Of a DNA stretch of 64,000 nucleotides, positions 9,501 through 39,290 are shown piece by piece. The DNA comes from Eukaryota sp. TZLM1-RC (taxonomy: Eukaryota > Protista > Metamonada: BaSk clade): NCBI GenBank assembly GCA_040285825.1, contig JAUPSS010000001.1, positions 2,356,001 through 2,420,000 on the forward strand, read 5' to 3'. Each line of letters opens with the position of its first letter. Within the stretch, counting starts at the first letter, position 1. The position numbers and the translations under genes are program-made. The notes below the pieces were generated by a model that saw nothing but the letters and a program-made list of their open reading frames with translations, made no database searches and had not been told where the DNA came from.

Positions 9501-10638
9501 CTTCTGGATCCCCTGGAATGACTCGTGTGTCCCTATATCTAGCGTAAGGGTTTTGCTGACGGGAAGCACCATGATAAACACTTGAGCTAGCGTAGGAGCT
9601 AGTTTGAGAAGGGGTAAGTTGAGCAGGTGTAGAGGATGTTCCTCTTCTAGCTTCAATCTCTCTGTCCAATCTTTTTCTGTGTTCCCAGTTTCGTTCTTCT
9701 TGGAGAAAACGCTCTATATATTCTTTAGAGACCTCACCAGGAATTTTGTCAATTTCAGAAGAAGGTGCCGTGGGAGGGACCTGATGTTGAGGTAGAGGGG
9801 AGAATTCCTTGGGAGGTTCCTCGTACTCAACCAAATCTGAAAAGATTTGTTCGTACCTTTTCCTTTGCTCTTCGGAAAGATACGAAGGAAGGTTCGAAAG
9901 GCTAGGAATGGGATCACTAGCCTGGTGAGGGGAAACAGATAGATTATTAACTCCACTAACTGTTGAAGTCAGAGGAGATCCTGAAGCTGGAACAGCAGGA
10001 TTTTGAATGTTTCTCCTAACAGTTGGAACTGGAGGGAGGAGCTGTTGAGAATGAGAGGGTGGAACCTCAGAACTAGATGAAAGGGATGAAGATGGTACTT
10101 CAATAGCCTTTGTAGAGGAGGAGGAAGAGGGTTGATCTTCTAATCCTTCCTTTGACGCGAGAGAAGGTTGAACAGTCTCTCTGTTCTGAGTAGAAGGTGA
10201 AGGTGGTACTTCAGAACTTCTTTCAGGGAGGAGAGAAGGTGGGACTTCAGACGCCCTTAAATGTGAAGGAGGAAGAGGAGCAACGGAATCCTCAACATCT
10301 TCATCGTCGTAGGAGACTAATGAAGGGCTTCTTCCTTTCGAAGGAATAGAATCCTTAGGAGGGTTGTCTCCTTCTACAGGAACGGAATCCCGAGGAGAGG
10401 AACTTCCTTCCATGGGAACGGAATCCTCAGGAAGGGAACTATCTTCCTTTGGGGTAGAACCCTCGGGAAGAGTTGCTTCAGGAAGCGCAGAAGCTTCAAC
10501 CGAAGAAGGAGGCACGGAAGCAGAGTCTGTGGTTAGTGGTGAGGAAGAGGGACCAGTCTCTTCCTCAAGGATCCTACGCTGAGCCGGGGACGACCCAATA
10601 CGTATTGATGGTCTTGGCTGTTGGTTATTGTCTGACAT
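3498..10638 (-). CDS. Gypsy A Gag-Pol polyprotein (two 1-bp homopolymer deletions near 4925 and 4795 split it)
   Basis: CNFCKQMGH..C knuckle, IDSGA protease, YIDD RT, DASD/TDH RNase H, HGLL..GH/CPSC zinc finger, DDE core (ADVIGP, HSDNG, VER), C-terminal chromo-like domain; adding 2 nt gives 7143 nt = 2381 codons. Confidence 0.9.
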
Positions 10639-10759
10639 ACAATGTGGAGTAACAGAAGTGTAATTTATTACGAAGAGGAATTGTATTCTCTCTTCTTAAG
10701 CTAACAGGCGGAATACTAATAACTAAACTATTAACTATAAATACTATTCAAGACTAACA
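10606..10759 (-). repeat. 5' LTR of Gypsy A (154 bp), contains the Gag ATG at 10638
   Basis: Direct repeat of 3350-3503. Confidence 0.97.
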
Positions 10760-10763
10760 GTCT

Positions 10764-10960
10764 GGTAAAACAATGAACTCCACTTTCTTGATAAATAGAA
10801 TTGTTTTTTGCATTTTCAAGTCTATTCCAACAATGATTTCAAAGGCACTTTTAGCTATTGGTGTAGAATATGAACGTAATGCTGTGAGTAGGTTCGGTAA
10901 TACTGACGCTTGTTTGGAGGATATTGAATTCTAGATAGATTTTACTTATTTCAATAAATA
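10764..10960 (+). mobile_element. 3' end of the N2 non-LTR element (resumes after Gypsy A)
   Basis: Encodes GKTMNSTFLINRIVFCIFK...DACLEDIEF*; the empty site AATAGGTCTGGTAAA is seen in the copy at 11641-11655 (minus). Confidence 0.85.
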
Positions 10961-11449
10961 TATCAGTTAAAAAAACTTAGAAGTTCAATGGAGTTTGCCA
11001 TGATCATTTTCCCCCTTTCTCTAGATTCCCTCTTCAATAATATTCTCAAACACACTTCAAACACCTTTTGTTCTCAATGACCTCCCTACCATCCGACGAA
11101 TGGAAGGCATTTTCTTGTTAAGTTCTTGTTGAGCACCACGTGAGAAAGAGTACAATACCATAGAGAAAGTACTTTGAATGGATTAGAATCGATGTTTAGA
11201 AGTTGAAGAAGACTACTTGGAAGATAACGATGAAGAAATAGAAGATATGGAGGATCGTTCTGTGAGGATTTCACGAGGATTCAGTGGTGCTCACTCACCT
11301 TAGTTTTTTTTGTAATTTTTATTGTGTTTCTTCAACAAGTATAGATGATTATAATAAAGACTAGTGTTAAGAATTACCAATGATTGAGGCTAACACTTGA
11401 GTAAAAACATTTTACTATTAAATAGATAAAATTTTGTTTCAGAAAACTG

Positions 11450-11672
11450 GAATATTTATTGAGATAAAAAACCATCTAGAACACAATATCCTCCACACAA
11501 GCGTCACTATTACTGAACCTACTCACAACATTACGTTCATATTCTAGACCAATAGCTAAAAGTGCCTTTGAAATCATTGTTGGAATAGACTTGAAAATGC
11601 AAAAAACAATTCTATTTAACCAGAAAGTGGAGTTCATTGTTTTACCAGACCTATTCAGTAACACTTTTTTAA
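11450..11672 (-). mobile_element. Short 5'-truncated 3'-end copy of N2
   Basis: Inverted homolog of 3325-3349 + 10764-10960; ends about 60 bp upstream of the ACR3 ATG. Confidence 0.8.
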
Positions 11673-11734
11673 AATACGATAAATAAAAAATACGGTAAAT
11701 ACTTTGTCTTCCATCACATTTATTTTTGACTGCA

Positions 11735-12805
11735 ATGATTGGAATCTTTGAGAAATACTTGACCATTTGGGTGGCTCTATGTATCATCTCAGGTACCTTG
11801 ATTGGTAACTGGATTCCTGCTATTCCGAAGTTTCTTGGAGAAACACTTACAGTCTATGAGGTCAACATTCCTATAGGACTGTTGTTATTCGGAATGATCT
11901 ATCCTATGCTTCTCAAGATCGACTTCAAAAGTGTGAAAGGCATCATGGAGCACAAGAAAGCTATTCTGATCACTCTTATCACTAACTGGCTCCTTGCACC
12001 ATTCTCTATGTTCTTGTGGTCAAAGTTATTCTTCGAGTCTATCTTTTCTACGTTTCTCACCGACACAGAACAAACGGGTTACCTTGCTGGTGCCATCCTT
12101 TTAGGAGTGGCTCCGTGTACGGCAATGGTCTTTCTGTGGAGTGTTCTCACAAAAGGATGCCCTACATATACACTTATCCAAGTTGCTGTGAATGATGTTA
12201 TTTTGATTTTCGCATTTGCCCCTATTGCCACATTTTTACTTAATGTAAGTTCAATCCCTTTCCAGGTTCGCACCATTCTGGTTTCTGTTGGGTTATTTGT
12301 TGTCTTGCCTTTCTTTTGTGCTGTTGTCACCCGGATGATCTTGCTTCGTAGACCTGGTGGGGAGAAGAAAGTTGAAGCCTTCATCAAGTTTGGAGGCAAC
12401 TTTTCCATGGTAGCTTTGTTGTCCACATTGGTTTTAATTTTTGTTTTCCAAGGCGACGCAATTCTCACTAATCCTCTTCATATTTTGTTAATCGCAGTAC
12501 CTTACACGATTCATACAGTTATTATCTTTATAATTCCATTCTTTACATCAGTGTTTTTTAAGGTGCCATTCAAATACACTGGTCCTTCATCAATGATTGC
12601 TGCTTCCAACTTTTTCGAACTTGCTGTTGCTTCCGCCATGGTGATTTATGGTCCTGAGAGCCCTGCAGTGTTGGCTACTGTAGTTGGAGTACTTACAGAA
12701 GTCCCTATCATGCTTTCTCTATGCAAGTTCATCAATTGGTATAGAGTCCGTGTTGAAGGGCCTGATGAAGAAGTTAAGCCTGCCCAAGAGGAGAGGAGGA
12801 AATGA
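11735..12805 (+). CDS. ACR3: ACR3-family arsenite/antimonite efflux transporter
   Basis: Multi-TM protein with FEKYLTIWV, MIYPML, NWL.APF, GAILLGVAPCTAMV..W, ASNFFELAVA, VVGVLTEVP.ML motifs; first ATG at 11735. Confidence 0.95.
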   Translation: MIGIFEKYLTIWVALCIISGTLIGNWIPAIPKFLGETLTVYEVNIPIGLLLFGMIYPMLLKIDFKSVKGIMEHKKAILITLITNWLLAPFSMFLWSKLFFESIFSTFLTDTEQTGYLAGAILLGVAPCTAMVFLWSVLTKGCPTYTLIQVAVNDVILIFAFAPIATFLLNVSSIPFQVRTILVSVGLFVVLPFFCAVVTRMILLRRPGGEKKVEAFIKFGGNFSMVALLSTLVLIFVFQGDAILTNPLHILLIAVPYTIHTVIIFIIPFFTSVFFKVPFKYTGPSSMIAASNFFELAVASAMVIYGPESPAVLATVVGVLTEVPIMLSLCKFINWYRVRVEGPDEEVKPAQEERRK

Positions 12806-13899: not shown

Positions 13900-13972
13900 C
13901 AAAACAACTAAAACAAAAAACTATAACTCAATATCCTTAATACACGCATCAACATCATCAAATCTCTTCAGT
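13900..13972 (-). mobile_element. 3' tip of non-LTR element N3 (split by Gypsy C1)
   Basis: Joined across the CAGT TSD with 29559+, it reads ...LGIEYENRALKRFDDVDACIKDIEL*, homologous to the N2 C-terminus. Confidence 0.75.
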
Positions 13973-14064
13973 TGTTGCCTAAAGTCTATTGTAGTAAAGA
14001 AAAGTCAATGAGGAAAAGTTGATTTAATTTCTAATCATATTATATAAGCCTTAGGGCGCCAACA
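13973..14064 (-). repeat. 3' LTR of C1 (92 bp)
   Basis: Direct repeat of 29463-29554; PPT GAAAAAGGGAAGAAGCAG adjacent. Confidence 0.95.
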
Positions 14065-14194
14065 CTGCTTCTTCCCTTTTTCAAAATAAAACAGCTTATA
14101 TGAATATGAAACAAAAACTATATACAAATAACGAAATAACTATAAATAAATACATATAATCGATATAATATAAATATTCGATATAAACTAAGAA

Positions 14195-14735
14195 TTAGCT
14201 CCTCTTCCTAATTCTATTACTGCGTCTAGGCTTCTTAGAAGGCGTAGCCTCATTGGAGGTACCTTGTTGTCGACTAGTGGTACGTTTACCTATTTTCTTG
14301 TTATCCTTACTAAATAACTTATAAGCTTCTGAGTGTCTAACCGAATGGAGTGGCTCTTCTGTTGTCTCACCGCCAAACAATTGAACAGTACAGAAACTAC
14401 CTGAATCAGAGTGGTATTCTGAGAGGATTTTCTCTATAACGTGTTTTTCGAAATCGCCTGCAGCGACTGCCTTGAGGAACTCAATGTCCTGTGGATTTTC
14501 TGCGTTATAGGTTTTGCAATCTTTCTTGGCAGCTTTTAATTCCATGCCAGTAGTAAGATTCTTCAATAATAAAGTGGATTTGGAAGGAAGGTCAACAACT
14601 AAAAATGGTCCATTCCAAGATCCATGCAATTTATTATTTTGCTTGGTTTTACGTAAGACGTAGTCACCAATATTAAATGCTAAAAAACACGAATTAGTAT
14701 TATCTACTGAAGACGGAGTATTTAATGTTTGGTGA
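14195..14735 (-). pseudogene. C1 integrase C-terminus with chromodomain and basic tail
   Basis: GPF motif and VIEKILSE..CTVQ.FGG chromo-like domain; homologous to the C-terminal part of 45288..46094. Confidence 0.85.
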
Positions 14736-14906
14736 TGTTGGCTTTAGTGCACGTTGGTTTTCCATAAACGAATAAAAACAGATGTTTATAGAACAGAGGT
14801 AGAAAATCAACAATAAACTAAACAATAACAAATTCAAACTAATGTTGACGTGATACATCACGTCATACTTTCCGAAATCGGCAAGAGAAGTTTAGCCTGG
14901 CTAACA
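14736..14906 (-). repeat. 3' LTR of Gypsy B (171 bp)
   Basis: Direct repeat of 21887-22057; purine tract ending GGCAG adjacent. Confidence 0.95.
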
Positions 14907-17900
14907 CTGCCTCTTCTTCCTTCTTTTTCGTTGTTTCTTGGCTGGAGGATCGGATAGTTTCACATAACGGGAATAGGCGGAAGTATTCTTAATGGATGAG
15001 ACAGGTTGTTTGGTGGTAGTCCCATCAGACCACAAAACGGTAGCTAGGTTACTAGAGATATCGAGAATAGCGTCCAGGAAGGCCTCTCCGGAATCTGCAG
15101 CGGCATAGGCATCTAGAACAGCGGGCGGCAAGGAAGAGTAACAAGGCTTAATGAGGTGTACTGAAGTTTTCAAGGAAGAGCGGGTAACCGGATTCAGAAC
15201 AAGAATGGAACTAGAGGATAGAATCTTCTGAACGGTGTAGGGCCCGACATAATGACCATGAAGTTTGTCTGGCTTCTCGCGCAGAACAAAGACACGGTCG
15301 TCTACTTGAGGACGATAAGAGGGCTCGGGCATATCGACAGTAGATTGATCAAGGGACTGGCCTACAGCTTCCCAGGAAGAGATAAGCCTCTCTGTCAATT
15401 TATGCAGGTGTTCGATGAATTCTGGTGTATCAGCAGGCAAGGAATGGGAGGCAAAGGAAGTCAATAGCTGGTTGGGCAGGAGACGAGGAGAGGAGTCAGA
15501 TCCGAAAATTAGACTATATGGAGAGGCGTTCAGAGCTTTCCTTTCTTGTGAGTTTAATACCATCTGGCAGAGGGGAACGTAATCAGACCAATTATGGTAA
15601 TCGGAGAAGTCGAGCAGCATACGTCGAATGACTTGAAGAAAGCTTCGGTGTTGGCGTTCTACCAATCCATTGGATTGATGGTAGTGGGGCAAGGACTGGG
15701 TATGTTCAACGTTCAGGAATTGGCATAGCAGACCGAATATCTTGTTGGCGAATTCGGGTCCGTTGTCAGTGTGTATACAACGTGGGGCACCGAAAACGGA
15801 GTAAACAGAGGAGATTAAGGAGTTGGCTACGGTTAAAGCCTTAAGGTCTTTCGTAGGGACTAGGATACTGAACTTGGAGAATGCATCAACAAAATGAACA
15901 ATATATCGGTAACCATAGGAGTCAACGGGCAGGGGGCCAATGGAATCGCAATGGATACTTTCAAATGGGCGGCGAACGGAATTCAAAGATCCAGTGGAGG
16001 AAATCAATGTCTTTGGAACGGGGGCAGTCTTTTGGCAAGGGATACAAGTATTGATGTGGGTTTGGAGGTCGCTTCGCATGTGGGGCCAGTAGAAGTCAGA
16101 CTGTTGGAGGGACTTCCAACATTGAGCGAAAGAAGGATGTCCGGCTTCGGTGGATCCGTGAACCAGAAGGAGGATCTCGGATCGAAGAGAGGGCGGAATC
16201 AAGATCTTATTGGATTGGGTTAGCTTTAAACCCAGTTGAGGTTCAATCCTACAATCAACAAACAGAGGATCACTATCAGGGATCTTTTGTTGTTCCTTGA
16301 ATAGCTTGTCAAGGAATGAACGTGCGGGTGAGTTTCGGACAAGGGGATTGCTGATCAAATCGGAACTTGCAGGAGATTCAGATAGGGAATGTACCAGGGA
16401 AGCAACATGGTGAGAGTCGGAATCGGTGGAGATCTCAATCATGGCGGAATCAGAGCTGAATCTACGATCACGTTCATCGTCTTCGGACATGAACTGGGAG
16501 CGGAGGAAACGGGGATGATCGAACACTTCCGGGTGAAGTTCAAATATCTCTCTGCGAGTGGGCAAGTGGAACTGGGAACTAGGAAGGTAGTAAGTGGGGA
16601 GATCGTCTGAGGAGCGGTTGATGTCTATGAAGGCCTGACGACCATCTCTACTAATGATTTCGAGAACTTTATCTCGAATAATGAAGTCGAGACGGGAGCG
16701 GTATTGAGTAGGGCTGTCAAACAGCAGGGAACGGATGTCCTCGAAGTGAGAGCAGGCCTGAGAAGTTTCTAGTATGAATTGGGGTTCATCTTCGGTTCTA
16801 AGGACTGAGTGATAGTCCAGCGGCAAATAGTGGTAGTGAATTCCTCTATCACGAGGGTCTATTCGATGGCTATGAACCATCTCCAGGCATGGAATGGCTA
16901 TGGGACAGGGAGTGACCTCGTCATCGTCGTAATGGTAGACGGAGTGGATCTCAGGCTTGATTAGGCAAAGGGGAATGAAGGAAGTGATGTCTCGAGATGA
17001 GGGTAAGGTGTAGTCAGCGTAAAAGGGGTCAGGGTGAGGTTGGTGATCGGTTAAAGCGGGACGTTTAGGGGTAGGTCTCAGGTTAGAGTATGTCAGAGCG
17101 GTAGGGAGTAAGCAAAAATCATATAGCTGTTCTCCAAAGGGGGTACCAGTATGAGTATCAGGAGTCCAAGGGAAATGATCACATTTAGGGCAGTTTGGAC
17201 ATTCTCTGGGGTTGCAAGGAAGGGGGTTGAATCATGAAAGCAGCGGCTACTTTGGTTGGCACGTTTCCACAGGTTGGGGAAATATAACGGCGGTGGATCC
17301 TTATTCAGATGCGATTGATTGATTAGAAGGTGGTATCGGTGGGTGAGGTGGCGGTTTCTTTCCCAGCTAAAAGGGGCCATGTGAGTAGGGAGAGGAATCA
17401 AGTGGAAGATATGCACGTGGTCAATCAGAGAACCTAGGGTTACATTGGGATGAATATAGTTGAGGACAATAAGGTGAGCGTTCAGGGGCATAACCTTGGG
17501 AAGATAGTCTATCTGGGGCATCTTGGGATGCTGGAAGTATATGCGAGAGTTCCAGTTGGCCTGTTGAATCAAATCGTTAACCTTGAAGTTTCTAGCATAT
17601 ATAGGTTCAGCATCGGGATCAATAGGAGCGGACACTGGCCGAGGATCAAAAGCAGCTTTGCCAAAGTCTTTTGGAGCGAATGTGTTGTTAAATAGGAGTG
17701 GTAAATCGGTTGAGAGGACGAAGAAGCGGGCGGAAGAGGGAGAGAGTAGCTCGTTAGGTTCAGGATTCAAATTGTATTGGATAAAGTGTTTGCTGGAGTT
17801 GAGGTAAGCAGTAACAGAATGCTCAGGACGGAGAGCAGAGGGGTGATGGGTTCTACGGGCGGTATCAAAGTCAATGTCATACCAATGAGGGGAGGAGTGC

Positions 17901-20900
17901 GTCAGACCGTCGAGGTTCAGGTAATTCCATAATGGAGATCTAGCCGATCCTCGATGAGTCATCATGCAGCACAGGGCGGGCGCAGGATTGTCAAAGACAC
18001 TTCTGGTCTTCTTCTCTTCTTTCTCCTTCTTCTTTGAAGCAGTTTCGACATAGTTAGCCCTAGATAAGTAGTCAGCCCAGTAGTTCTTAGTTCCTTCAAT
18101 GTGAACACAGTCGAAGGAGAAGGACTGAAGGACGGGGATCCATCGGAGAACAACTCGATTGTTGTCGGGGCAAGAGAACAAATATGCAAGGTTCTTGTGA
18201 TCGCAGAAAATGGTTAGGTGCTTAGTCAGAAGATATGACGAGAGATTGGGTTGGTTCAACGTCATAACTATAGCGAAAAGCTCTTTCTGAAGGGTGGATT
18301 ATCGCTGTTGTGAAGGAGTTAGAATACGTGAGTAGAAAGACACGGGCATTACCTTGCGTTTTGAAAGGCAGGTTCCTGGGGGGCAAGGTTCTAACTCTTT
18401 CCAGACAATACCAGCGATAGCTTTGTCAGATGCGTCGGTGGACACAAGAATTGTGTCATCTGGGTCAGGTAAGGCGAGAGGAAGGCTATTAACCACCATT
18501 TCCTTGATATTGTTGAAGCATTGGAGTTCTTGAGGTCCTAACTTGATGCGTTTAGGTTTGTTCTTCAATAACGCAGTTAAGGGGGCAAGTTCTTTGGATA
18601 CAGAGGGGAGCCAGTCACGGAGAAAATTGATCGAGCCAGTGAAGGATCGGAGTTCGGGGACGGAAGTCGGAGGGGCTAGGTTACGTACGGTTTCAATCTT
18701 AGAGGGATCGATGCGGCGCTTTCCATCTTCAAAGATGGTTCCAAGTATCTTGATAGGATGTCGGTCGGTCTGGAAGGAACACTTGTGAAGACCGATTCTC
18801 ACACGATAACGGCGAGCACGAGACAAGATGTAGTCTATTCTTTGTAAGAAGGCTTCTTTCGTTGAGGCGGCTACGATGATATCATCCATATAGATGAATA
18901 TTCCTTCAGAGTCAAAAATACCTTTCATGAGGTTTTGAAACACAGCAGGAACATTCTTCAGGCCAAAAGCAGCACGGGTGTATTTGATCTTCCTTCCGGG
19001 GATGACTATGGCCGATTTCTCTTGATCATCGGGATGCAGATTTAACTGCCAGAAGGCTTTTGGCAAATCCAGGGTGGCAATGTATTTATTACCAGAGAGG
19101 AACTCACAGACATCAGAAATCTTGGGCAAATCGGCTGGAACAGGGACAGTTAGGTCGTTGATGCCTCCAGCACCGGAGTAATCTCCAGTTAGACGAGGAG
19201 GTTTCCCAGGGCGTTGGACGAGACAGATAGGAGAGCTCCAAGGTCCATCATAGGGCACAGCAAAACCATTGTTTACGAGCACGTCCATTTCTTCGTTGGC
19301 AACCTTTAGCTTATCCGGGGACAGGTAACGGAATTTCTTAGAGACAATCTTGGATTCATCGTGGAAAGGAATGCGCATCGGTGGACAGTCTATACCTTCG
19401 GGAGCTGGGAGCTTAGAAAATACTTCTGGGTATTTGAACAATAAATCTTTGATCGAAGTTTCCAGAGCAGGGTCGTTCAGCAGAAACGAGGTTTTGTCCA
19501 GATCAGGGAGAGCGGAGAGAGCAGAGACTCGGTCAGACGGAGGAATGAACAGATCAGGGATTGATTCATCTTCCATTAACTGATAATTTTTATCAGATAG
19601 GTTAAGGAAGAGGTAGTCATTGGTTAGGATGCCTAGCCTTTTGAGGAGGTCGCAACCAATGATACATGAATTCTGGCAAGGGAGTACAGCAAGGGTTACG
19701 TCGATAAAGGTGAGCTTAGCGGCGCCTCCAAGAGAGAAGGCGAGCTTTCCAGAAACAAGGGGGCAGACAACTTTAGTCCGATCAGCTAGTCCTACTTCAA
19801 GGGAGTTATTCGTGGGATGGAGCTTGGCCTTTTTGGTTAGATCTTCAGAGATACAAGAGATAGTGGCTCCAGTGTCTACCATTCCGTACAGGAAGGTCTG
19901 TTCATCGACTAGGATCTTCAAGTGGAGCAGCTTCTTGTCTACAGGCTTGTTGAGTTCTTTCTCAAATATTGAGATCATAGGCTTAGCGAGGGAGTCGTCC
20001 TTCTTGAACAGTTCCTTAGATCCTTTGGTCTTGTTCTTAGAGCGTTTCTTGGTTAATTCAGAGGCATCATGCGTTACTCCACCGTCGGCGTAAGCACAGT
20101 CGGCGTCGACCAGCCCAGACTCAGTGTCGAGGTCGGGATTAGCTTCCAACGACAAAGAGTCTATGTTACGGGAGGGAGCCTTTCCTGGCGGTACCACATG
20201 AGATAAGCTTGAAGAAACCTTCGAAACTAACTCGTTAGAATTAGACACGGGATTAGAGGATGGTTCAGAGGAGGATGAGAGAGAACGAGAGATAAGAGCG
20301 TGGTTTGAATCTGAGACAGGAGGGGCTATTGAATCTAAGTTGTCGAAGAGTTCTTGAAACTCTTGAGCGTCAGAGAATGACAGGGAGGGTGTTGAGCTTC
20401 TGGATGTTGAAGGAGATGTCGAGTAGTTATAAAGGTTTATTGAGGAGAATGGGTTAAGGGTCATGCTATAAGAATCATTGTCAGAACTAGAGGAGGATGA
20501 GGACATTACTCCATGCGGGAAGATGCTCTCGACGGCAGTATCTTCTTTCAAAGCAGACTGAATCGAATCAATGATTGAATTAACCTGGGGCTTTTCAGGG
20601 TTGGCGTCAGTTACTTGGTTGACTTGGCGGCGAAGGTTGTGCTTTCTTTGGAGGGTAGGATTGTTTCCATATTTTCGAGGTTTGCTGGCTTTGCATCCAG
20701 GCTTTGGGCAGTCCTTCACCATATGGCCGGGCTCCTTGCAATAAAAGCAAGTTATGGGAGAGGGAGACTTCTGAGGAGAGAAATATTTCTGCTCAGAACG
20801 AGGACTTTGACGGGAAGGCGAAGACTTGGGGGTGGAGCGAACGGAATAAGACTTGTTGGCAGAGCGGTGGGCCTGGGGAGTTCGAGAATTCTGACGAGAG

Positions 20901-21916
20901 GGTTGAGATCTAGGAAGAGGAGGGTTTTGGCCATGCAGAGTATAGTAAGCAGAGTACGGGAGGTGATAGGAAGGGAGAAGTTGACGGAGGCGAGAGACTA
21001 AGGAGGAGAAGCTATCAATAGAGCCAGTTTCTATGTCGGTTCGGATGATAAAGCGGAGTCTCTCGGGGCGTATTCCATTCGTAAAGAACTTCATACGGGC
21101 AGATTCAGGTAGTTCGGAGGGACAGAGCCGGAGTTTCTTGAGGAAGACAGAGATGTAAGAAGTGATGGCTTCTTCAGCGGTTGGAGCGGACAGATTGAGT
21201 TTCAGAGATTGGAGCTTATGATAAGCCTCAGCAGAGTCTTCAAAACGGCAAAAGGATAACAAGTGGGAAAGAACGGCTTCAGGGTCGTTAGGATCGATTC
21301 CTTCGAAGATTTCGAAGGTCTCTAACACTACAGGGGCAATAGTACATAACACGTACGGCAACATAGCTTGATGAAGTTGATTCTCAGAAACGAGGCGGCG
21401 TCTTTCGAAGGTAGCAACATTGGTAGTATCGGAAGAGTCAGAAGGCGGGTCTTGACTTTCTTCAAAATCCATCTCGGAGGGAAGTTTGAAGTTTCGAGGG
21501 TTTAAGGTCGAACTTGGTTTTCTCGTTCTAGTGGAGACAGGGGTAGATTCGGAGGTGTCTTCAGTACTCAATTCGGAATTCTCGGTGAGAGAAAGTTGGG
21601 ATTTCAGAGCAGCGACTTCTTGGGCGAGAGCCTTGATAACTTCTCGGTCAGAATCGCAGTAGGAGGACTCGGGTGCCTTCGAGCCGGAGGGAGACTGAGA
21701 GTGAGTAGAAGACGGATATCTTCTTGTCATGTCTGACGAGACATGATGAGAGGACATACGAGATACGTACACCTTAAGCGCTTCCACATACTGGGAGATG
21801 GCTTCTCGACCAGTGTGTTGTAAATACGGAGCGACTTGAGGGTACCTGGCTACGGAGTTGGATTCTCTGGCGTCCACAGTAATTACTGTTGGCTTTAGTG
21901 CACGTTGGTTTTCCAT
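14901..21916 (-). pseudogene. Gypsy B Gag-Pol (one in-frame TAA at 18299-18301 and one frameshift near 17200)
   Basis: CFYCKEPGH..C knuckle, VDTGA protease, YMDD RT, RNase H, large unknown insert, HHCC + DDE integrase, chromo-like tail; likely start MENQ at 21916. Confidence 0.9.
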
Positions 21917-22057
21917 AAACGAATAAAAACAGATGTTTATAGAACAGAGGTAGAAAATCAACAATAAACTAAACAATAACAAATTCAAACTAATGATGAC
22001 GTGATACATCACGTCATACTTTCCGAAATCGGCAAGAGAAGTTTAGCCTGGCTAACA
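21887..22057 (-). repeat. 5' LTR of Gypsy B (171 bp)
   Basis: Direct repeat of 14736-14906. Confidence 0.95.
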
Positions 22058-22061
22058 GTGA

Positions 22062-25000
22062 CGCTCTGCTTCTTCCCTTTTTTCTTGTAGACGAGTGTTT
22101 TTCATTTTGATGTCATCTAATAAGGGGATATTAGTTTCAAATTTGGATAAATTTCCTAATATATTAGCAGGGTCTGTTCTTGGGCTAATCGAAGAACCAA
22201 ACATGAGTTCGTATGGGGTAAAACCAGTTTTTCTGCTTTCAGTAGAATTTATTAATAGTTGGGATATAGGTACGTATGTAGACCAATTTCCGTAATCGTT
22301 GAAATCTATTAATAGTTTCCTTAAGCATTGAAGAACGTCTCTATGTTTACGTTCTACAAGTCCATTACTTTCTGAATAGTGGGGAATTGAGTTACTCGTC
22401 TCAATCGCTAATCTGTTACACACTATTTTAAAAGTCTCGTTGGCGAACTCAGGTCCATTATCACTATGAATTAACATAGGTATGCCAAAGATAGCGCAAA
22501 CATTCCAAATTAAGGCATCTGCGGTTTCTAAGGCATTGAGTTCTTTTAGAGGGACTAAAATTGTATATCCAGTAAAAGAGTCTACAAATACTAAAAGATA
22601 TTTATTTCCTTCGTTGTCGGAATTTAGGGGTCCAATTGTATCGACGTTTAATCTGGCAAAAGGACGATTTGCCCATAAAGATCCTGTGGAAGGTGTTCTG
22701 AGCTTCTGAGTGTCTAACCGAATGGAGTGGATCTTCTGTTGTCTCACCGCCAAACCATTGAACAGTACAGAAACTACCTGAATCAGAGTGGTATTCTGAG
22801 AGGATTTTCTCTATAACGTGTTTTTCGGAATCGCCTGCAGCGACTGCCTTGAGGAACTCAATGTCCTGTGGATTTTCTGCGTTATAGGTTTTGCAATCTT
22901 TCTTGGCAGCTTTTAATTCCATGCCAGTAGTAAGATTCTTCAATAATAAAGTGGATTTGGAAGGAAGGTCAACAACTAAAAATGGTCCATTCCAAGATCC
23001 ATGCAATTTATTATTTTGCTTGGTTTTACGTAAGACGTAGTCACCAATATTAAATGCTAAAAAACACGAATTAGTATTATCTACTGAAGACGGAGTATTT
23101 AATGTTTGGTGACGCTCTGCTTCTTCCCTTTTTTCTTGTAGACGAGTGTTTTTCATTTTGATGTCATCTAATAAGGGGATATTAGTTTCAAATTTGGATA
23201 AATTTCCTAATATATTAGCAGGGTCTGTTCTTGACCTAATCGAAGAACCGAACATGAGTTCGTATGGAGTAAAACCAGTTTTTCTGCTTTTAGTAGAATT
23301 TATTAATAGTTGGGATATAGGTACGTATGTAGACCAATTTCCGTAATTGTTGAAATCTATTAATAGTTTCCTTAAGCATTGAAGAACGTCTCTATGTTTA
23401 CGTTCTACAAGTCCATTACTTTCTGAATAGTGGGGAATTGAGTTACTCATCTCAATCGCTAATCTGTTACACACTATTTTGAAAGTCTCATTGGCGAACT
23501 CAGGTCCATTATCACTATGAATTAACATAGGTATGCCAAAGATAGCGCAAACATTCCAAAATAAGGCATCTGCGGTTTCTAAGGCATTGAGTTCTTTTAG
23601 AGGGACTAAAATTGTATATCCAGTAAAACAGTCTTCAAATACTAAAAGATATTTATTTCCTTCGTTGTCGGAATTTAGGGGTCCAATTGTATCGACGTTC
23701 AATCTGGCAAAAGGACGATCTGCCCATAAAGATCCTGTGGAAGGTGTTTTTGATCTTTTAACTGGAGCCGTTTTTTGACAAGTTGGGCATCTTTTGACAT
23801 GATTAATGAGGTCCTTTCTCATAATGGGCCAGTAGAAATCGCTTTTGGATAGTTTGTGTAAACTATCGTTTTTACTAGGGTGACCAGATTGAACCAAACC
23901 ATGTATTAGTAGTAGTGCCTGTTTTCTGAGGCTCTTTGGAATCAAAATTTTGTTTTTATTATTTTTCCAAATTTGAGTATTTTCATCTAGAATTGCATTT
24001 TCAAATAACGAGTCGTTGTTGTTTTTGGCTATTTGTTGTTCGGATCTTATCTTAGAGAACCAAGAAGAAAAAATAGGTAGGTCTTGGTGTCTACTTAGAG
24101 ATGAGATTGATGGGATGTCTTCAAGGTCCGAATCAGAATCATCGTCTAGTGGAGGTATCTCGTAATTTGAAAGTAAAGTATCTGGTATATTTATGCTACA
24201 AATAGAAGGAGTTTCCTCGTTTTGATCCAAATCAATATTCCTCGATAACATATCTGCCCAATGTTGTGGTTGTCTTCACCAGGTTCGTGGACTATGTCAA
24301 AGTCGAATTCAGATAGTATCGGCAGCCATCTCTTTACAATTCTATTTTTCTCTGGGGCTGTAGCCAGGAATGCAATGTTTTTATGATCTGTGAAAATTGT
24401 TAAATGTCTAGTTAACAAGTAGCTTTCTAAACAACTTTCAGTTAAAATCAAAAGTATTGCATATAATTCTTGTTGTAATGTGGACCATTTTCTTTGTGTT
24501 TCTGTAAGTAAGCTACTGTAGAATGACAAAGGTTTTACTTTCCTTTTATTCAGCGGGGTTTCTGCAGGGGAGTAGGGTTCAATTTCTTGCCAAATAACAC
24601 CTCCTACTGCTACATCTGAAGCGTCAGTACTTATCAATACTCGCTTGCCCGGAGCTGGTAATTCAAGGGGCATGTGGTTTACTATTAAGTCTTTTATTTG
24701 TTTTAAGTAATCGTCATGCTTGCTAGTCCATTTAATTATTCTGGGTTTACCTTTAATTAGCTCGTTAATTGGAGCAATTGATTCAGAAATACCTGGAAGC
24801 CAATCTCTAATATAATTGATGGATCCTACCAATGAGCGAACTTCTTTCACTGTTTTTGGTCTAGGGATTCTCATCAAGGCTTCGATTTTTTTCTTACTAA
24901 TAAATCTAGTTTTATCCTGGAAGGTACTTCCTAAAATGTCGATAGGGTGTTTTGATGTTACGAATTTACATTTACGTAACCCTATATTTACACGTCTATT

Positions 25001-28000
25001 TCTGGCGCATTGGAGGACTCTTTGTAATCTCTTATAAAATTCTTCGAATGTCGTTCCAACTATTATGATATCGTCAATGTATATAAAAACGCCGTCTATT
25101 TGGAAAATTTCCATCATTACGTTTTGAAAAACTGCTGGGATGTTCTTTAATCCGAAGCAAGCTCTTTTAAACATGATTGACCTTCCAGGAATTGAGATTG
25201 ATGTTTTCTCAATATCCTTATCAGCTACATTCATCTGCCAGAAAGCTTTTGGTAAATCAAGCGTGGCGATGTAATTTGCTCTACTCAAAAATTCTAAAAT
25301 ATCACTAATCCTAGGTAGATTAGGCTCTACTGAAATCGTATGGGCATTAACTCCATCTTTACCACTAAAGTCTCCAGTTAACCAGGGTTTCTTGCCGTCA
25401 GGATATATAACTAAGACAATAGGAGAGCTGAATTTATAATTAGATTCAACTGCGTAACCCATTTCGATCAGTTCATCAAATATTTTGTTTGCTATTTCCA
25501 TTTTGCTGGGATTTAACCGTCTATCAGGCTTGTGTACTATAGCATTCTCATCTCTAAAGGGGATTGTTAGAGGATTACAATCGATCCCTTTTCTATTAGG
25601 AGTTTCACTAAAAACATCGCTGAATAATTTTAGTAGACTCGTTAATTTTAATTTAGTATTACTATCATCTAATTTTATCTCACATCCAGATCTTGCTAAT
25701 TGCTCCTCAAAATCAGAAGGACTTGGTGATTGGTTATCTAAGTTTCCAATCGAATGTTGAGCGATCCTGGAGTCGAATTCTGATTCTGCATTTAGCAAAG
25801 TGCGGTGTTCTTTGTCTAATCTAATGAAAAGACCATCATCCGTCTGAAGCCCAAGTGCTTTTAACATGTCTGTCCCAATTAATAATTTGTTCGAACCCGG
25901 GATTATGGGAAGAGTATGTTTATAATGAACTTGTTGCGCAATGCTTCCTACGTTGATCGACAGAATACCAGTTGTACTCCCTAGCGATTTTGAGGATACG
26001 TTATTAGCTGGTAAGAACTTAATAGTATCCTTGCTATTGATTGACATATGGCATTGTTCAGCTAAATCTGCAGTAATAACTGAACAAAACGCAGCCGAGT
26101 CTATAGTCGCAATCATTTTAATATCATTTATTGATATCTCCAGTCTTAGAAATGGAGAACGCTGGGACCTGATGTGGTTTTCACTAACCGTAGAATTAAT
26201 ATCAAAAATACTATTGATATCAGAGCTGGATTGGTGAATTTGTAGAGGAATTAAAAGATTTTGTTGAGCTGTTGGAAAGTTGTTGACTGGGTTTCCTAAA
26301 TCGGTTGTTGATTGATTGTGATTGATTCCGTTGATGTGTACCCGATTAGGTAAGTTGCCTGTCCTGCTGTTCCGGTTGCTGTTGTTGATCCGTCTGTGAG
26401 GAACCGTACTCGAACGGGTCGGTTTTGACTCAGTAGGGGATGCGTTTGATGATATATCCTCTGTAGTGTTGATGTTATAAATGGGTCTGTACTGACCTCT
26501 TCCTTTATGACCTCTAAAACGGTCTCCACGGCCTCTAAATTTGAATCTATGTACACGTCTACCACGGCCACCTCGGCCCCTTTCTACACTGCCTCTACTA
26601 GCAAGCGCCTCCTGTTCTTCAAATCTGAATCTTTCTTCTTTGGGGACTCTGCTTCTAGCACAATGAGGATCTTTGCATTCGAATACAGTGTGGCCAACAG
26701 GATTGTTACCTTCGACGTTGCTGCAGAATGTACAGAATTTTGACCCTTCTCGTTCATGCTTTTCAGGGATGTATTTGTGTTGAGGGGTTCCTCTTGACTT
26801 TCCACCTGATCGTCTTGCTCGTTTTGATGGAGCCTGGGCTGATGATGTTACTCCTCTTGAGTAAGTTCTCATCGCTGTGAGTCCCAATGGAATATCTTCT
26901 TCGTTAGCCCTGTTCCTTAGTACATCCATTGTGGGCTTGTTTCCTGCTGTGTAACACCAAGCGAGGAAATGTCTTCTCGTTGTCGATATCAAATCGAGTA
27001 GAGTTGTTCTGTTCGGTGAGTCCCACAAGGATTCCCTAGTCCATACTGGGAGGAGTTCGCTCGATATAGCAAAGTTGTCCAAACCCATAAGAAAGTACTC
27101 GGCTATTAGAGCGGGAGATATGGATATCAACCCACTGCTTCCTCTAATTAAATCGGGGATGGTTAGGTCGGTCATGTAGGTGGTCATTCTCAAGACGTCT
27201 CCAAAATCTTCTACATAACGACCAAACTCGTTGTCAGCCTCGTGCCTATTGTGGATTTTTCTCCAGTTTATTCTAGGCTTCATTAGAGCTGTACAAGCCT
27301 CATGATATGATGTGAATTGTGTTCTTTTTAGCAGAAATACCATGACGTCGGCGTCGGTATAATCAACACCGAGTAAACCTTGACTTTGCCATCTGGATAG
27401 AAGGCTAGGGTCAATCATGCTGGATATTCCTGTAGGGCAAGTGCTCATCATAATGCTCCTAAATAAATCATAATGGTGGATTGAGGGTCCGAGCTTATCT
27501 GTTATAGCTGGCTCAATCCTTACCAAAGGCTGTGTTGTATCCCTGGTGATCTCGTCGCGTATATGTTTGGGGAGATCTTTAATCCTATCTTGGGTTATTT
27601 CTGCTTGGCCTTCTCCAAATAGCTGGGTAGCTATCATAAAGGCTCTGGTCCAATCTGATTGACCTGGGGTTTCAAGGCTTCTATTAGCTATCTTTCGCCC
27701 GTATTTATCCCAAGTTTGATATTTTAAAAGAAAAGCTATGATAGACATTTTGTTGATAGGGTCATCAGCGGATAATCGAGGTCTTTTATAGTCGATATCC
27801 TTAGACCGTGGATCAATCTGTCTATGAAGGCTACTAGCTATGCTCATGTCAATAGCACTTCTTGAGGATTGTAGGTCCTCAATACGCATAGATCTGTCGG
27901 AAGAAGAGTTTCTTACTGAGGGTTGAGGAGGAGCCGTTTCTCCAACGACTGGCCCGTTCAACTCTATGTCTTCTCCGATTTCACGTTCCATAGGTTGGAA

Positions 28001-29385
28001 GGAAGTTGGTTCTTCCTGAGGAGCAACGTCTTGTCTTGTTACAGGTTCCGGGGCGTTCACTGTTGGAACGTGTTCGGGTATGCTGTCAATAGAGCAGACC
28101 TGTATTGGTTGGCTTTTTTCAGAAATTATAGGGGCTACAACAGGCAGTTTGGGAAGGTGGAGAGATGTGGATGGATTTCCCGTTACCCATTGTCTAAACT
28201 CTCGTTGTTTCGTGAACGAGTTACCATGTTGTTGGATGTAGTTGTTAGGACGGCTCCTATACGTGGATACAGCTGATCGTTCCGTATGAATGTTGTTTAA
28301 AGCGTCTGCATCAAACCAGGGTGTTACCGGTTCAAGCTTGTCTGGTTCACTACTATCCTCCTGCTCCATAAATTCCCTAAAATATGTGGGAGCACCCTCT
28401 GTCAGCTCCGTGTAATTATGGATTTCCGTATCAAAGTTAGGATCAAACCAGGCAGGCAATTTGGATTGTAGGATGTCTTCCGAGTCGGTCCTACTTCTCT
28501 GCTCGATGGAGAGAAACCTTATTCTCCTGCCGTGTTGATCTAGGAAGGAGGCCTTCCAATCCAATCTATCTTTGATGGGAAGAGACATCATTTCATTGAT
28601 TCTCTTGTCCATTTCAGAGATTCTGGGGCGGCGCTCTGCGTTACGCCCGAATGTCTCTCTACTCAGTTTATCGAGTGCCTTTATGAGTTCATTCCTTTCA
28701 TTGAGGGGAATATCCAATACCTTTTGGGTATCCCCAATCATTCCGAGGGTCTGGAAACCAACGTTTCTGCCTCTTTTTTGAATGTAACTCCATAAAGGAG
28801 GAAGCTGCTCGAACAGACAGAAATCTGTTGGTTCGAGGTAAGCCTCCGCATCCTCTCTTAATAACTTGTAGAACCACTCAGAAGAGTCGTCTTCTCCCTC
28901 CATTTCATCCAGTTGAGATTGAATTTCTTCATATTCTCCTAATGGGGAAGACGTGTCTAAGGTGGGATCTCCATCCGTTCCCTTTGAGACAGGTTCTAGA
29001 ATTGGGAGGGGAGAGGGAGCCGGGTCCGTTCTCGTTGCCTCCGAGGACAATTCTGCATACTTGAGGGGAGAGGGAGCCGGGTCCGTTCTCGTTGCCTCTT
29101 TCATTGCTTTGAGGGGAGAGGGAGCCGGGTCCGTTCTCGTAACCTCATCTGTTTCTTTTTCCTGAGGGGAGAGGGAGCCGGGTCCGTTCTCGTTACCTCT
29201 TCTGTTGTTGAAGATGGAGGGACCTCGTCCACTCTTTCATCTTCTTCTACTTTAAGGGAGGGGGAGGTGGGATCCGGGTCCGTTGCCTCGTTACCCTCTA
29301 TATCATGTATGTGTGACGCTGGTACCTGCTGCATGTTAAGTGGGGGATTAGAGTCAGAGATATCTGGTTGGGAGATGTCTGACAT
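22062..29385 (-). pseudogene. C1 Gag-Pol (frameshifted; integrase core partly duplicated)
   Basis: ORFs 29101..29385, 24191..29104, 22602..24251 and 22052..22753 with CTFC..GH..C, IDSAA, YIDD, DASD, HHCC and DDE motifs. Confidence 0.9.
29006..29193 (-). repeat. 4x ~50-bp coding tandem repeat (TRTDPAPSPL) in C-family Gag
   Basis: GAGGGGAGAGGGAGCCGGGTCCGTTCTCGT occurs four times; same array at 39483-39670. Confidence 0.9.
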
Positions 29386-29462
29386 GCTGTAAAGTGCCTG
29401 GGGATGTTTACTAATGCTGAAGTTATGGTATACCTTTTGACTTTAAAATGGCCAATAATTAT

Positions 29463-29554
29463 TGTTGCCTAAAGTCTATTGTAGTAAAGAAAAGTCAATG
29501 AGGAAAAGTTGATTTATTTTTTAATCATATTATATAAGCCTTAGGGCGCCAACA
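29463..29554 (-). repeat. 5' LTR of C1 (92 bp)
   Basis: Direct repeat of 13973-14064. Confidence 0.95.
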
Positions 29555-33920: not shown

Positions 33921-34660
33921 ATCTTGTAATTAATAAAATACCTTTTCCGACTCTGAATTGTCAAAACTTTTTTATATAGATAATGTCTGTTTGCAACAAC
34001 TTATAAATGTAGAGCTTATCTAACACTGATTAATCAACGGTAAATTCAGTTTCTTCAATTATGAAAGAGTTTCTGCTTTTGTTAGCTATATTTGACCAAA
34101 TACTATTAATCATTTGATCTTGGTCAATTGAAGGACAGAGTAAGTTGACATGCTTCTACAAAACGGTCTTCACGACACTTGATAATCACATATCATCAAG
34201 GAATTTTTAACCATGTTCATTTATGAAGGTTTTTCCATCTAATCCCTCCACAAGGAAGCTTTCATTAAACAGAAAGGCGGGAACCAAGCCAAAGAAACAA
34301 TTATTAATTAATTATTCATAAAAAATCAAAAAAAAATGATTATTTTGCTTGAAGTTCATTCAATTGCTATGTCTAATCGATTTGGACCTGTCTTGTAACA
34401 CAGTCTAAACTAAATGGACTAAGTCTACCTGAGAAGACTTGTCGAAGCTTTGATTAATTGAACCTAAACAAATGTCAAAGAAACAGAAGTTGTTTTAATA
34501 TCTTCTTGACAAACATCACCCAAAGTTATATATTTTTTCTAGCACCATCATCATGACGTCATCATGATGCAATTGTGATCCACATGAATGATTCAACAAA
34601 TAAACCTTGTCAATTATGCAAAAAAACTAAATTTATTAATAAATATTACTAAAACAATCT

Positions 34661-36208: not shown

Positions 36209-37142
36209 GTAGAAAAACTGCAAAATTCCTTAAGTAAAGATGGAGAATTGATGTTTTGAAAGAGAAAAGGATTTCATTTGTTTCAACTATTCTTGTTAAT
36301 CACAATCACAGTGTGAGCACACTTTGCTTAATTTACTGATATTTTTCAACAAGAAGACTAAATTATAAATTGTTTGATATAGAAAAATCTTGTATTAGAC
36401 ATTATCTTATGTTCTTATCGTAGACAGTAGACAATTATTATTGTCAGTTCATTCATTAATAAATATATACTAGTAATATTGTTTACCAAATTTGACAAAT
36501 TTAACACTACAAGTGAGATCACATTTGGTCAGGCGTTGTGATCAACAAGTATGGTTTGAACCTTCATCAAAATTGCCTTTTATAGGTGATTGGTTCTGTT
36601 TCGACTACACCCTTGATGCATCACTTACCACTTACAATGTAACGAAATATCAATTGCAAAAATATCAGAACAGAATTTATAAATAGAAGTGCTGCTAACG
36701 AGTTTGTAGCATAACAAATGACGGATTGATTTGAAAATGAAACCAAGTAGTCACACAACATAATGTTCAGAGTGATGAACTAGTTCAAGATTTGACTTTC
36801 AACACCAGTAAATCCTAGTAAATTCTTGGGTTCAAAAGTGACTAGGAATAGATGAGTGATTTTGCTATGAAATTAATGAACCTTTTAGCAAAATAAGCTG
36901 ATTTTGTGTGATTAAAATTATTTAGAATACTAAGCTTTGTATTTAAATAGTCATGACAAATCTAACCACTTCTTCATGAGCCAAAACAAATAAAATAAAA
37001 AAATAAAATAAAAATAATAAAAAAATAAATCAAGAATGAATCAGCAAAAAAAATAACAAAATTAATCAAGAATTTATGACAGAGAAAATACAAATACAAA
37101 TCAAAAATATAATATACAGAGGATAAAAAATAACTAAATCAA

Positions 37143-37934
37143 TCAGTAATTAACAGCATTTCTGCTCTTTTGAGGATGTAAAGCAATTGCGATGCTACAG
37201 TCATTACCAGGTATTAAGTTGACTAGACCTAATTGTTCAGGGCTTCTACTTAATTGTTCGATTCTTTTACTACTTTTTGGTCTACAACAAGGTCGAATTC
37301 TCTTATTCAAAACACATTCCCGAACATTAGGCGCATTGTTGATTTCTGGAGCTGAATCAAACTTTAAAGGTGTTTCTCTTAGTGAGAAATGCTGCTGCTT
37401 ACCAAATTCTTTCCTTTTCTGAGTCAATACCTTACTTTCGTAGTAGTGATCAGGTTTAAATGTTGCACTGGGAGAAGGTCCGTAGAGATGACCAGCTGCT
37501 GTGAACTCAGAACTTGGGGCAATAGGAGCTGACCAGAGACGTCCTGAAGAATCCATAGAAGTAGCAGTACCAATACATCGTTCTTTAGGGGCGACTCGGT
37601 AGTGTGTAGAGGTGAGAGGATTTGAAGCGGAAGCAGGAGCAGTCTTGGGGCGGAGATAAGGAGCAAGAGGACCAGAGTAAGAAGGCGAAGATGGCTTCGG
37701 AGCAGTGCCCCGAGTGAAATGGAATAAGGTCTCTGATAGGCCGTCTGATGTCAGGGATCGGTTGAAGTACTGATGAGCAGGTGTAGTTGAGGGTCGTGAA
37801 GCTTGTACTGTGGATGGTGTTGATGTGGTAGACAAACTTCGTCTATTTTTACGAATCGAAGAAAGACGTGTTTTTAAAAGATCCTTTTCATTGTTTGTTG
37901 ATATGGAAGAGAGCGATGGAGTGTAGTCTGTCAT
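37143..37934 (-). CDS. Hypothetical Ser/Thr/Pro-rich basic protein
   Basis: 263-aa ATG-initiated ORF with higher GC than its flanks; no recognised domain. Confidence 0.6.
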   Translation of the reverse strand: MTDYTPSLSSISTNNEKDLLKTRLSSIRKNRRSLSTTSTPSTVQASRPSTTPAHQYFNRSLTSDGLSETLFHFTRGTAPKPSSPSYSGPLAPYLRPKTAPASASNPLTSTHYRVAPKERCIGTATSMDSSGRLWSAPIAPSSEFTAAGHLYGPSPSATFKPDHYYESKVLTQKRKEFGKQQHFSLRETPLKFDSAPEINNAPNVRECVLNKRIRPCCRPKSSKRIEQLSRSPEQLGLVNLIPGNDCSIAIALHPQKSRNAVNY

Positions 37935-38359
37935 GGTATTACTAGATGAGGTTAATAAATCAAAAGCGAGAATATGATTGATGCTGTCAAATTTGCTATT
38001 TTTTAATGAACCAATGAACCTTTATTTAAATTGTCCAGTCAACAGCATGCAAAATTCTATTTGCATCCATTTTTATTTTCTCTTTTTGGTTCACTTGCTC
38101 CCATGGATATATGCTTTTTGGCAGATTTTGAAATGATTGTAAAGAGAAGAACTAACAGAAATTTCAACAGATTGTTTTGGCAAAGTAGAATTTTGTTTTA
38201 TATTTTTAAGGGGATGTTGGAAATGGTTTCTGATACTTTGCTTTCTCTTGGATCTCACTATGAGAGAGTTGCATCTAGTTTTGTTTTGGGAGAGATGCAT
38301 TATTTAGATGTTGATTTATTCGTTTTCTGATAAATAAATATATTTCAAAAGAAAATTTG

Positions 38360-39134
38360 AACTAAAACACTTAATAAAATTAAATCAGAACTAATGGGAA
38401 TAAATTCAAACCAAGATTTTCTCTACAAAATCCTGATCTGCTTGCTGTCTAGCTAAAGCGTCTCTTATTCGATTGAAAAACCGAGGTAATCTATTAATAA
38501 TGGCAAATTGAATCTGTGAACGCCATAAAAAAATATCAGATTTTCATTGTTTTTTCTTGTACCATTTTTTGGAAGTCATTCAAAAAAGTTTCTGCTTCAA
38601 CTGATAATCTTCCATTTATCGAAAATGGGAAAGCAATAAAAACCAGCTGTGTACTTCAATCGGCATTAGCCTCTTCAATATCTTTATCATATTTTCTATG
38701 TTTCTCTTTTGGTTTAAAATCAAGAGCAGTCACAAGATTAAGTTTTCTTCTGTGAACCAAAGTATCATTTGCAACATTACATGAAACAAAGTCAACAATA
38801 GCTTCAGAATTATCAATCCAATCACAGTATACATCACCTCTATCATCAGAACCAAAATTATTCAGAGAAAGTGTTTCCTTCAGCAGGGGCTCTTTGATAC
38901 ACGATATTTTTGCAGTTTGTGCCCTATTGAAAACAGTGTCTCTAACAGCATCATGTAATGAAGAACGATAAGTTATCAATTTAGAGCAATTCAGAGCATG
39001 GCGCAAAGTGAGTTGAGGTGAATTCGAACAAATACATTTTTCTTTTGATAATAATTGATTAATGGGGATATTCAAATATAATCTCATTTTTGTTACAAAT
39101 GCTTCATTAGTGGCACACAATCCAAATCTTCGTG
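38360..39134 (-). mobile_element. Old N1 non-LTR copy, 3' part (continues at 46308-46476 and 51530-51780)
   Basis: Homologous to the N1 3' region; contiguous across TSDs CGTG and TGTA when compared with the intact copy at 48840-49270; 3' boundary approximate. Confidence 0.85.
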
Positions 39135-39213
39135 TGTTGGCGCCCTAAGGCTTATATAATATGAATGGAAAATAAATCAGACTTTTCTTCACTACAATAG
39201 ACTTTAGGCAACA
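39135..39213 (+). repeat. 5' LTR of C2 (79 bp)
   Basis: Direct repeat of 46225-46303 (3 adjacent mismatches at positions 4-6). Confidence 0.95.
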
Positions 39214-39290
39214 ATAATTATTGGCCATTTTAAAGTCAAAAGGTATACCATAACTTCAGCATTAGTAAACATCCCCAGACACTTTACAGC

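Follow-up and report, generated by a model that had tools for sequence, protein, structure and literature searches.

The choice of primer is a defining step in how long terminal repeat (LTR) retroelements replicate, and in general the 3' end of the minus-strand primer sets the edge of the unique 5' region (U5). The only primers established by experiment are a host tRNA (or a tRNA fragment) and self-priming of the Tf1 type. Ty1 of Saccharomyces cerevisiae, a Copia-type element primed by initiator tRNA-Met, has its Gag start codon in U5 and its primer site within the Gag coding sequence. Tf1 of Schizosaccharomyces pombe, of the Tf1/sushi type, is a Ty3/Gypsy element without a tRNA primer; its primer-binding site (PBS) pairs with the opening 11 nt of the transcript it belongs to, and RNase H cuts this RNA-RNA duplex by U5 so that the element's own RNA becomes the primer. 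Retroviruses carry short perfect palindromes with covarying lineage variants in their 5' leaders, as in the dimerisation initiation site (DIS) of HIV-1 (human immunodeficiency virus type 1), the PBS palindromes of HIV-2 and mouse mammary tumour virus (MMTV), and a 14-nt palindrome upstream of the PBS of human T-cell leukaemia virus type 1 (HTLV-1). The closest case is that of the fungal GalEa Copia elements, which have no tRNA PBS; in its place, 9 conserved bp adjoin the 5' LTR and form a palindrome together with its final base, a "Conserved Hairpin Site" whose mechanism is unexplained (PMC5445492). Here I describe a palindrome at the same position in Ty3/Gypsy-type elements of Eukaryota sp. 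TZLM1-RC, found in a window of 64,000 nucleotides (contig JAUPSS010000001.1, positions 2,356,001 to 2,420,000; positions below are those of the window), and trace it through its relatives. The isolates TZLM1-RC, TZLM3-RCL and GEM-RC1 are Skoliomonas, anaerobic free-living metamonads.

In the elements A, B and C of this window the 5' LTR closes in CA and is followed at positions +1 to +8 by a perfect 8-nt palindrome, so placed that its symmetry axis lies 4 nt 3' of the LTR end. Flanking CA and TG (ACA and TGT in B) lengthen the palindrome to 12-14 nt. Element A, on the minus strand, carries the 8-mer ATACGTAT (10598-10605) within the 12-mer CAATACGTATTG (10596-10607), and B, also on the minus strand, carries GTAATTAC (21879-21886) within the perfect 14-mer ACAGTAATTACTGT (21876-21889). 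Both copies of C share the 8-mer ATAATTAT and the 12-mer CAATAATTATTG, which lie at 29455-29462 and 29453-29464 on the minus strand in C1 and at 39214-39221 and 39212-39223 on the plus strand in C2. A first-pass annotation, made from the letters of the window, had reported these four sites and their fixed geometry; the sites are where it put them, and the geometry holds when LTR boundaries are fixed by LTR pairs and 4-bp target-site duplications (TSDs). It had also predicted CA, an 8-nt palindrome and TG at the 5' junction of a fourth element, D, which runs past the window end. The contig continued beyond 64000 (locus L011) contains the D 5' LTR together with its palindrome GTAATTAC at L011:5520-5674, and the junction indeed reads ACA-GTAATTAC-TGT, within an 18-nt perfect palindrome.

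The same site recurs well beyond the window. Loci of divergent polyproteins (numbered with L) were taken from all three Skoliomonas assemblies, LTR pairs were identified by self-alignment and these were checked by 4-bp TSDs. Every one of the 12 families whose LTR pair could be verified has a perfect 8-mer palindrome at +1 to +8. L001, L004 and L005 carry GTAATTAC, L003 carries ATACGTAT, and L007 and L010 carry GTACGTAC. L002 and L008, whose LTR closes in TA, carry ATAATTAT followed by TATCC; L009 carries ATTATAAT followed by TGTGAC; and L012 carries TTAATTAA followed by AGGCAG, with unpaired flanks. The verified families thus use six distinct 8-mers (ATACGTAT, GTAATTAC, ATAATTAT, GTACGTAC, ATTATAAT and TTAATTAA). 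Two candidate junctions, with LTR-like ends for which no partner LTR was recovered, carry ATAATTAT and AATGCATT. L006 (the P0027 family) yielded no junction, its 5' region being disrupted. Five different palindromes exist side by side in the TZLM1-RC genome alone. In seven LTR pairs the two copies are 100% identical, which marks the elements that carry the palindromic site as recently active. One further CA-GTAATTAC-TG, at L001:19164, sits in a short repeat array, and no reading is drawn from it.

A chance origin of these palindromes is excluded, because an 8-mer palindrome begins at no more than 0.47% of positions across 319 kb of the host's sequence, against 12 of 12 families and both candidate junctions at +1 to +8. 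When the 14 junctions are aligned without gaps, all 56 cells of the four core pairs show Watson-Crick pairing. Two-sided, compensatory changes occur at each of the four pairs, and there is not a single one-sided change or G-U pair. None of 500 shuffles reached the observed pairing or covariation score, and sliding the partner by 1-3 columns left 16-66% of cells paired; extending the comparison to the six-pair 12-mer gave the same covariation outcome as the 8-mer core. The first-pass proposal that selection acts on self-complementarity, for which scoring against shuffled controls had been suggested as a check, is borne out by complete Watson-Crick pairing with double changes at every pair position. 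Its description of additional pairing outside the core, between U5 and downstream bases with a bulge of 1-2 nt, stands for A, B and C, in which for example GACC (10592-10595) and GGTC (10610-10613) flank the palindrome of A with an AT bulge, and GGC/GCC and GACTTTA/TAAAGTC flank that of C2. Across families this outer stem is only partly conserved, with 69% of cells paired in one register, and it includes some compensatory pairs such as GACC/GGTC in A versus GATC/GATC in L003. As far as sequence can tell, palindromy kept by paired compensating mutations points to reverse transcription that would be primed by the element's own RNA.

Phylogeny places these changes within a single lineage. In a tree of reverse transcriptase (RT) and RNase H, all Skoliomonas elements form one clade with 100/100 support, so the families A, B and C, at first taken for three divergent ones, all belong to one Skoliomonas-specific clade. 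The palindrome changed state at least six times on this tree, including between the sister families L001 and L007. The relatives found by scanning metagenome data are only distant Gypsy lineages (22-38% identity) and served as negative controls: none of the five such elements passed through the same pipeline has a palindrome at +1 to +8, and one of them has an ordinary TGG-led site 2 nt past the LTR.

How does the Skoliomonas site compare with the systems described above? The idea is not as new as the first-pass annotation supposed, and the palindrome has a precedent: GalEa is one close case in the literature, differing in superfamily, host, second copy and covariation. In both, a conserved short sequence adjoins the 5' LTR and is self-complementary, in GalEa together with the last LTR base or bases (A-CTGATCAGT or A-CTAATTAGT), and neither shows a conserved tRNA-type PBS. 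Both vary at symmetric positions, a bigger hairpin that bulges where the LTR ends may form in both, and a central TAATTA core is common to the GalEa site, GTAATTAC and ATAATTAT. However, GalEa belongs to the Copia superfamily and to Pezizomycotina, whereas the elements described here have the Gypsy order of protease (PR), RT, RNase H (RH) and integrase (IN), inhabit a metamonad and form their own RT clade. GalEa also has CHSeq2, an inverse-complementary copy that lies 12-41 bp downstream and bears a fixed A/A mismatch, whereas no second inverse-complementary copy lies within 120 nt in the Skoliomonas elements (allowing up to one mismatch for the 8-mer and up to three for the 12-mer), and a second copy of the GalEa type is accordingly rejected. 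Finally, the Skoliomonas palindrome is an even 8-mer that starts at +1 and runs into CA and TG, and its covariation is much richer.

The likeness to Tf1 would be that of a Ty3/Gypsy element without a tRNA primer, whose own RNA serves as primer once RNase H has cut an RNA-RNA duplex at the PBS by U5. The difference is that the Tf1 PBS pairs with the start of its own transcript whereas the Skoliomonas site pairs only with itself, so that its partner would be a second RNA. A search of each LTR for complements to +1 to +24 gave a longest match of 5-6 nt, equal to shuffles, which rules out Tf1-type self-priming and agrees with the earlier statement that the LTR holds no complement of the site. Each 8-mer is also single within its element, with no further copy that might act as a cyclisation partner. 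A stable monomer hairpin was considered and rejected: minimum free energy (MFE) z-scores range from -1.95 to +1.67 relative to shuffles, and the hairpin is missing from several MFE folds. The predicted homodimer duplex of the 20-mer, at -7 to -28 kcal/mol, is 2-4 times as stable as the hairpin (0 to -8 kcal/mol). The possible switch from hairpin to extended duplex is one more feature shared with the retroviral DIS. However, the retroviral palindrome accompanies or sits in a tRNA-complementary PBS, whereas the Skoliomonas palindrome holds the PBS position itself and no conserved tRNA complement is found. In A and B, as in Ty1, Gag starts in U5 and the site lies in Gag coding sequence, although Ty1 is of Copia type and uses initiator tRNA-Met.

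I tentatively propose that the 8-mer after U5 is the minus-strand PBS of the Skoliomonas-specific Ty3/Gypsy clade, that it pairs with its counterpart on another genomic RNA molecule, and that it acts as dimer linkage as well. The palindrome is a candidate PBS because the sole conserved feature at the U5 edge pairs with itself, and the partner would be a second genomic RNA of the element because the site is its own complement and only that RNA is guaranteed a matching 3'-proximal sequence. Two packaged RNAs would pair antiparallel through the palindrome over 8 bp, or usually over 12-18 bp with CA/TG and U5 bases. A cut in one strand directly 3' of the 8-mer would follow, with the RNase H of the element as the presumed enzyme by analogy with Tf1, and the resulting 3'-OH would be extended into U5 and the repeat (R) region of the partner RNA. 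The same duplex could double as the dimer linkage. Family-specific palindromes would prevent cross-pairing among co-resident families, which could account for the five in TZLM1-RC, and the symmetric double changes would arise if the primer's palindrome is copied by plus-strand strong-stop DNA. I put forward with still greater caution the broader idea of a third class of LTR-retroelement priming beside tRNA priming and cis self-priming of the Tf1 type. It would act in trans, each packaged dimer drawing its primer from the partner RNA, and the palindrome would be PBS, dimer linkage and family recognition code at once. In a whole clade that keeps only a self-complementary 8-mer at the primer position, through repeated compensatory change, nature has set up a clean experiment. 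It suggests that one interaction can serve both to dimerise the genome and to prime, and adds a second, independent example to the unexplained fungal GalEa site. If the proposal is true, the same logic might explain the GalEa palindrome, implying a convergent or very ancient origin. The LTRs, at 79-171 bp, are short and readily synthesised substrates for biochemistry, and the host is a recently described, deep-branching anaerobic protist whose transposons are so far undescribed; the Skoliomonas genome paper does not mention transposons.

Several observations weigh against priming by the partner RNA. With a palindromic PBS, strong-stop DNAs could self-anneal. Several of the palindromes consist of A and T only, with a predicted 8-bp duplex of about -2.5 kcal/mol, which is weak for a primer and template. 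TGG occurs shortly after the palindrome in most families, and one element has a short match to a host tRNA (both considered below). Furthermore, MMTV, HIV-2 and HTLV-1 have palindromes within the PBS or next to it that act as dimerisation signals and not as primers (PMC5874298). This last point leads to the main rival, in which the palindrome is a signal for dimerisation or packaging only, as a DIS-like hairpin or extended duplex at the boundary of U5 and leader, and the primer is an unrecognised host RNA annealing over it or just after it. Retroviral dimerisation sites are likewise self-complementary with family-specific variants, U5 and downstream flanking bases could close a stem around the 8-mer, the five palindromes coexisting in TZLM1-RC would fit a code for self-recognition, and the very weak all-A/T palindromes speak against a demanding primer duplex. 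However, dimerisation would not require the exact start at +1 seen in every family, including L012 with its unpaired flanks; no other conserved candidate PBS lies 0-5 nt from the LTR; and TGG never occupies +1 to +3. The present observations would suit either role, and I consider this explanation only somewhat less likely than the proposed primer site. A further explanation holds that the palindrome is a site in DNA for a dimeric protein, either a transcription factor just downstream of the short LTRs or the integrase. Strict Watson-Crick symmetry without G-U pairs and LTRs of merely 79-171 bp would suit such a site, and the TAATTA and TACGTA cores resemble homeodomain and bZIP sites, but the repeated switches of core (TAATTA, TACGTA, TATA, ATGCAT), even between sister families, would each demand a new binding protein, and regulation does not need nucleotide-exact placement at the LTR edge. 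This makes it very improbable.

Ordinary tRNA priming would require that the true PBS is a TGG-led site past the palindrome, the 8-10 nt of palindrome then being a structured spacer that is copied into the cDNA end and trimmed by integrase. Because +1 to +3 is never TGG, the CCA end of a tRNA cannot anneal flush with U5. Further downstream, nine of the 12 verified families do have TGG, as does one candidate junction of the two, at either +9 or +11. A, L003, L004, C, L001 and L007 have it at +9, B and L010 at +11; D has TGTTG at +9 to +13 and no TGG there. The earlier assertion that no TGG-led sequence follows is therefore wrong for A (TGGGTC), B (TG-TGGACG) and C (TGGCCA), in all of which TGG comes after the palindrome or overlaps its end. 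Nevertheless, three verified families with identical LTRs (L002/L008, L009a and L012) have no TGG after the palindrome, and the TGG-led sequences differ even between the sister families A and L003 or B and L004. A complement to a tRNA needs G after TGG-N, owing to the near-universal G1-C72 pair, yet 8 of the 9 cases have another base there. Pairing with the C that is conserved in the CAACA at the LTR end accounts equally well for the G of TGG, and a PBS offset of more than about 5 nt is atypical. The comparison with host tRNAs spanned four species (Arg-ACG, Tyr-GTA, Pro-TGG and His-GTG), the only tRNA genes in 360 kb of host sequence, and the post-palindrome sequences gave no anchored match adjoining the palindrome to the 3' ends of these four; an Rfam scan of the window found two tRNAs and nothing else. 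In L001 the sequence TGGTCGAG at 9190-9197 (+19 to +26) matches the window's tRNA-Tyr over 8 nt of its 3' end with CCA added; the sister family L007 does not conserve this match, which is regarded as chance. Two resemblances, of L004 TGGAGCCC to the 3' end of a tRNA-Lys and of the post-palindrome sequence of B to the tRNA-Ala acceptor end, were not used as evidence, the former being no more than a lead. I consider a tRNA primer downstream of the palindrome improbable, but with four tRNA species compared, a tRNA site 8-10 nt downstream may still serve the families that have TGG.

The elements themselves were laid out from long direct and inverted repeats and by reading the junctions in the window sequence. 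Between the LTRs of A, B, C and their relatives, Pfam domains follow the order PR-RT-RNase H-IN of Ty3/Gypsy elements (Metaviridae). The proteins encoded by the retroelements match those of Eukaryota sp. TZLM1-RC at 90-99% identity and have relatives of about 50% identity in TZLM3-RCL and GEM-RC1. LTR lengths range from 79 to 171 bp; the LTRs start with TGTT and close in AACA or ATCA, except for one family that closes in TA, and every element has 4-bp TSDs and a purine-rich tract upstream of the 3' LTR that ends in GCAG or GTAG. In the LTRs (39135-39213 and others) a TATA-like box lies about 10-15 nt from AATAAA, which implies an R region of only a few nt.

Element A is a full-length Ty3/Gypsy-type element of 7.4 kb on the minus strand (3350-10759), defined by its LTR pair, the TSD GTCT and Pfam matches to PR, RT, RNase H and the integrase core (rve). 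Its 5' LTR of 154 bp (10606-10759) reads TGTTAG...CCATCA; its 3' LTR (3350-3503) has, on the element strand, a polypurine tract (3504-3518) before it and no palindrome after it. One open reading frame (ORF) encodes Gag-PR-RT-RH (4885-10638, with about 1180 amino acids upstream of the protease) and another encodes IN (3498-4745). The Gag ATG (10636-10638) lies inside the 5' LTR, in U5, and the ORF reads on through the palindrome; in B the Gag start codon is likewise in U5 (21914-21916, with a B-family gene model from 21916). Since Gag starts inside U5 in both, U5 and the palindrome are translated, in line with the first-pass annotation, which had placed the palindrome of A and B within Gag coding sequence. 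The 3' host flank of A (3341-3349, element strand AGACCTATT) is identical at 7 of 9 positions to the post-LTR sequence of A itself, ATACGTATT, a likeness that reflects either chance or a target preference.

Element B (14736-22057, minus strand, 7.3 kb) has LTRs of 171 bp (14736-14906 and 21887-22057), encodes zf-CCHC, PR, RT, RH and IN, and is nested in C1 with a 4-bp duplication. C1 thus spans about 13973-29554 on the minus strand, interrupted by B, with LTRs of about 92 bp at about 13973-14064 and 29463-29554; an internal tandem duplication of about 1 kb (1051-bp spacing, 22058-23408) adjoins the nested B. C2 (39135-46303, plus strand, 7.2 kb) has 79-bp LTRs (39135-39213 and 46225-46303) and a Gag ATG at 39291, and lies inside a repeat of about 0.9 kb, flanked by a 4-bp duplication. 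The part of D in the window (59213-64000, minus strand) is its 3' part, with the 3' LTR at 59213-59358 and an IN ORF at 60194-61591. A box of AGTGCAC is conserved in U5 of B, D and the L004 group (21895-21905, 51506-51526 and 59225-59235, and in L004 and L005). At 51509-51526 there is an LTR end of the L004 type without a palindrome after it, as expected of a solo or 3' LTR.

The window is eukaryotic, with host genes that lack introns (adaptin, DnaJ, a tRNA methyltransferase and an SBF transporter) and two tRNA genes. tRNA genes lie near LTR elements both in the window (52097-52169 and 58374-58457) and in L001 (15746-16248): tRNA-Tyr is about 750 bp from the D 3' LTR, and tRNA-His and tRNA-Pro are 0.5-1 kb from the L001 element. 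By analogy with Ty3 or the elements of Dictyostelium, this closeness may reflect targeting. The repeat that was the insertion target of C2 is one copy of a repeat of about 0.6-0.9 kb that is present five times (1-619, 38365-39134 with 46304-46476, 48062-48977, 50538-51453 and 57368-57966). Pfam gave no hit for its ORFs; at 47100-48065 it is adjoined by a weak RVT_1 match. Two of the copies are arms of a 3.4-kb near-perfect inverted duplication (48062-51453), in which 48062-48977 and 50538-51453, as well as 49127-49526 and 49990-50389, are arms with 100% complementarity. This structure is either a genuine large palindrome or a product of misassembly. Finally, clusters of long palindromes of up to 20 nt built on ACACGTGT occur in two species, at L007 22882-23270 and L008 17068-17320, unrelated to LTR junctions, and may represent a different repeat or a transposon end.

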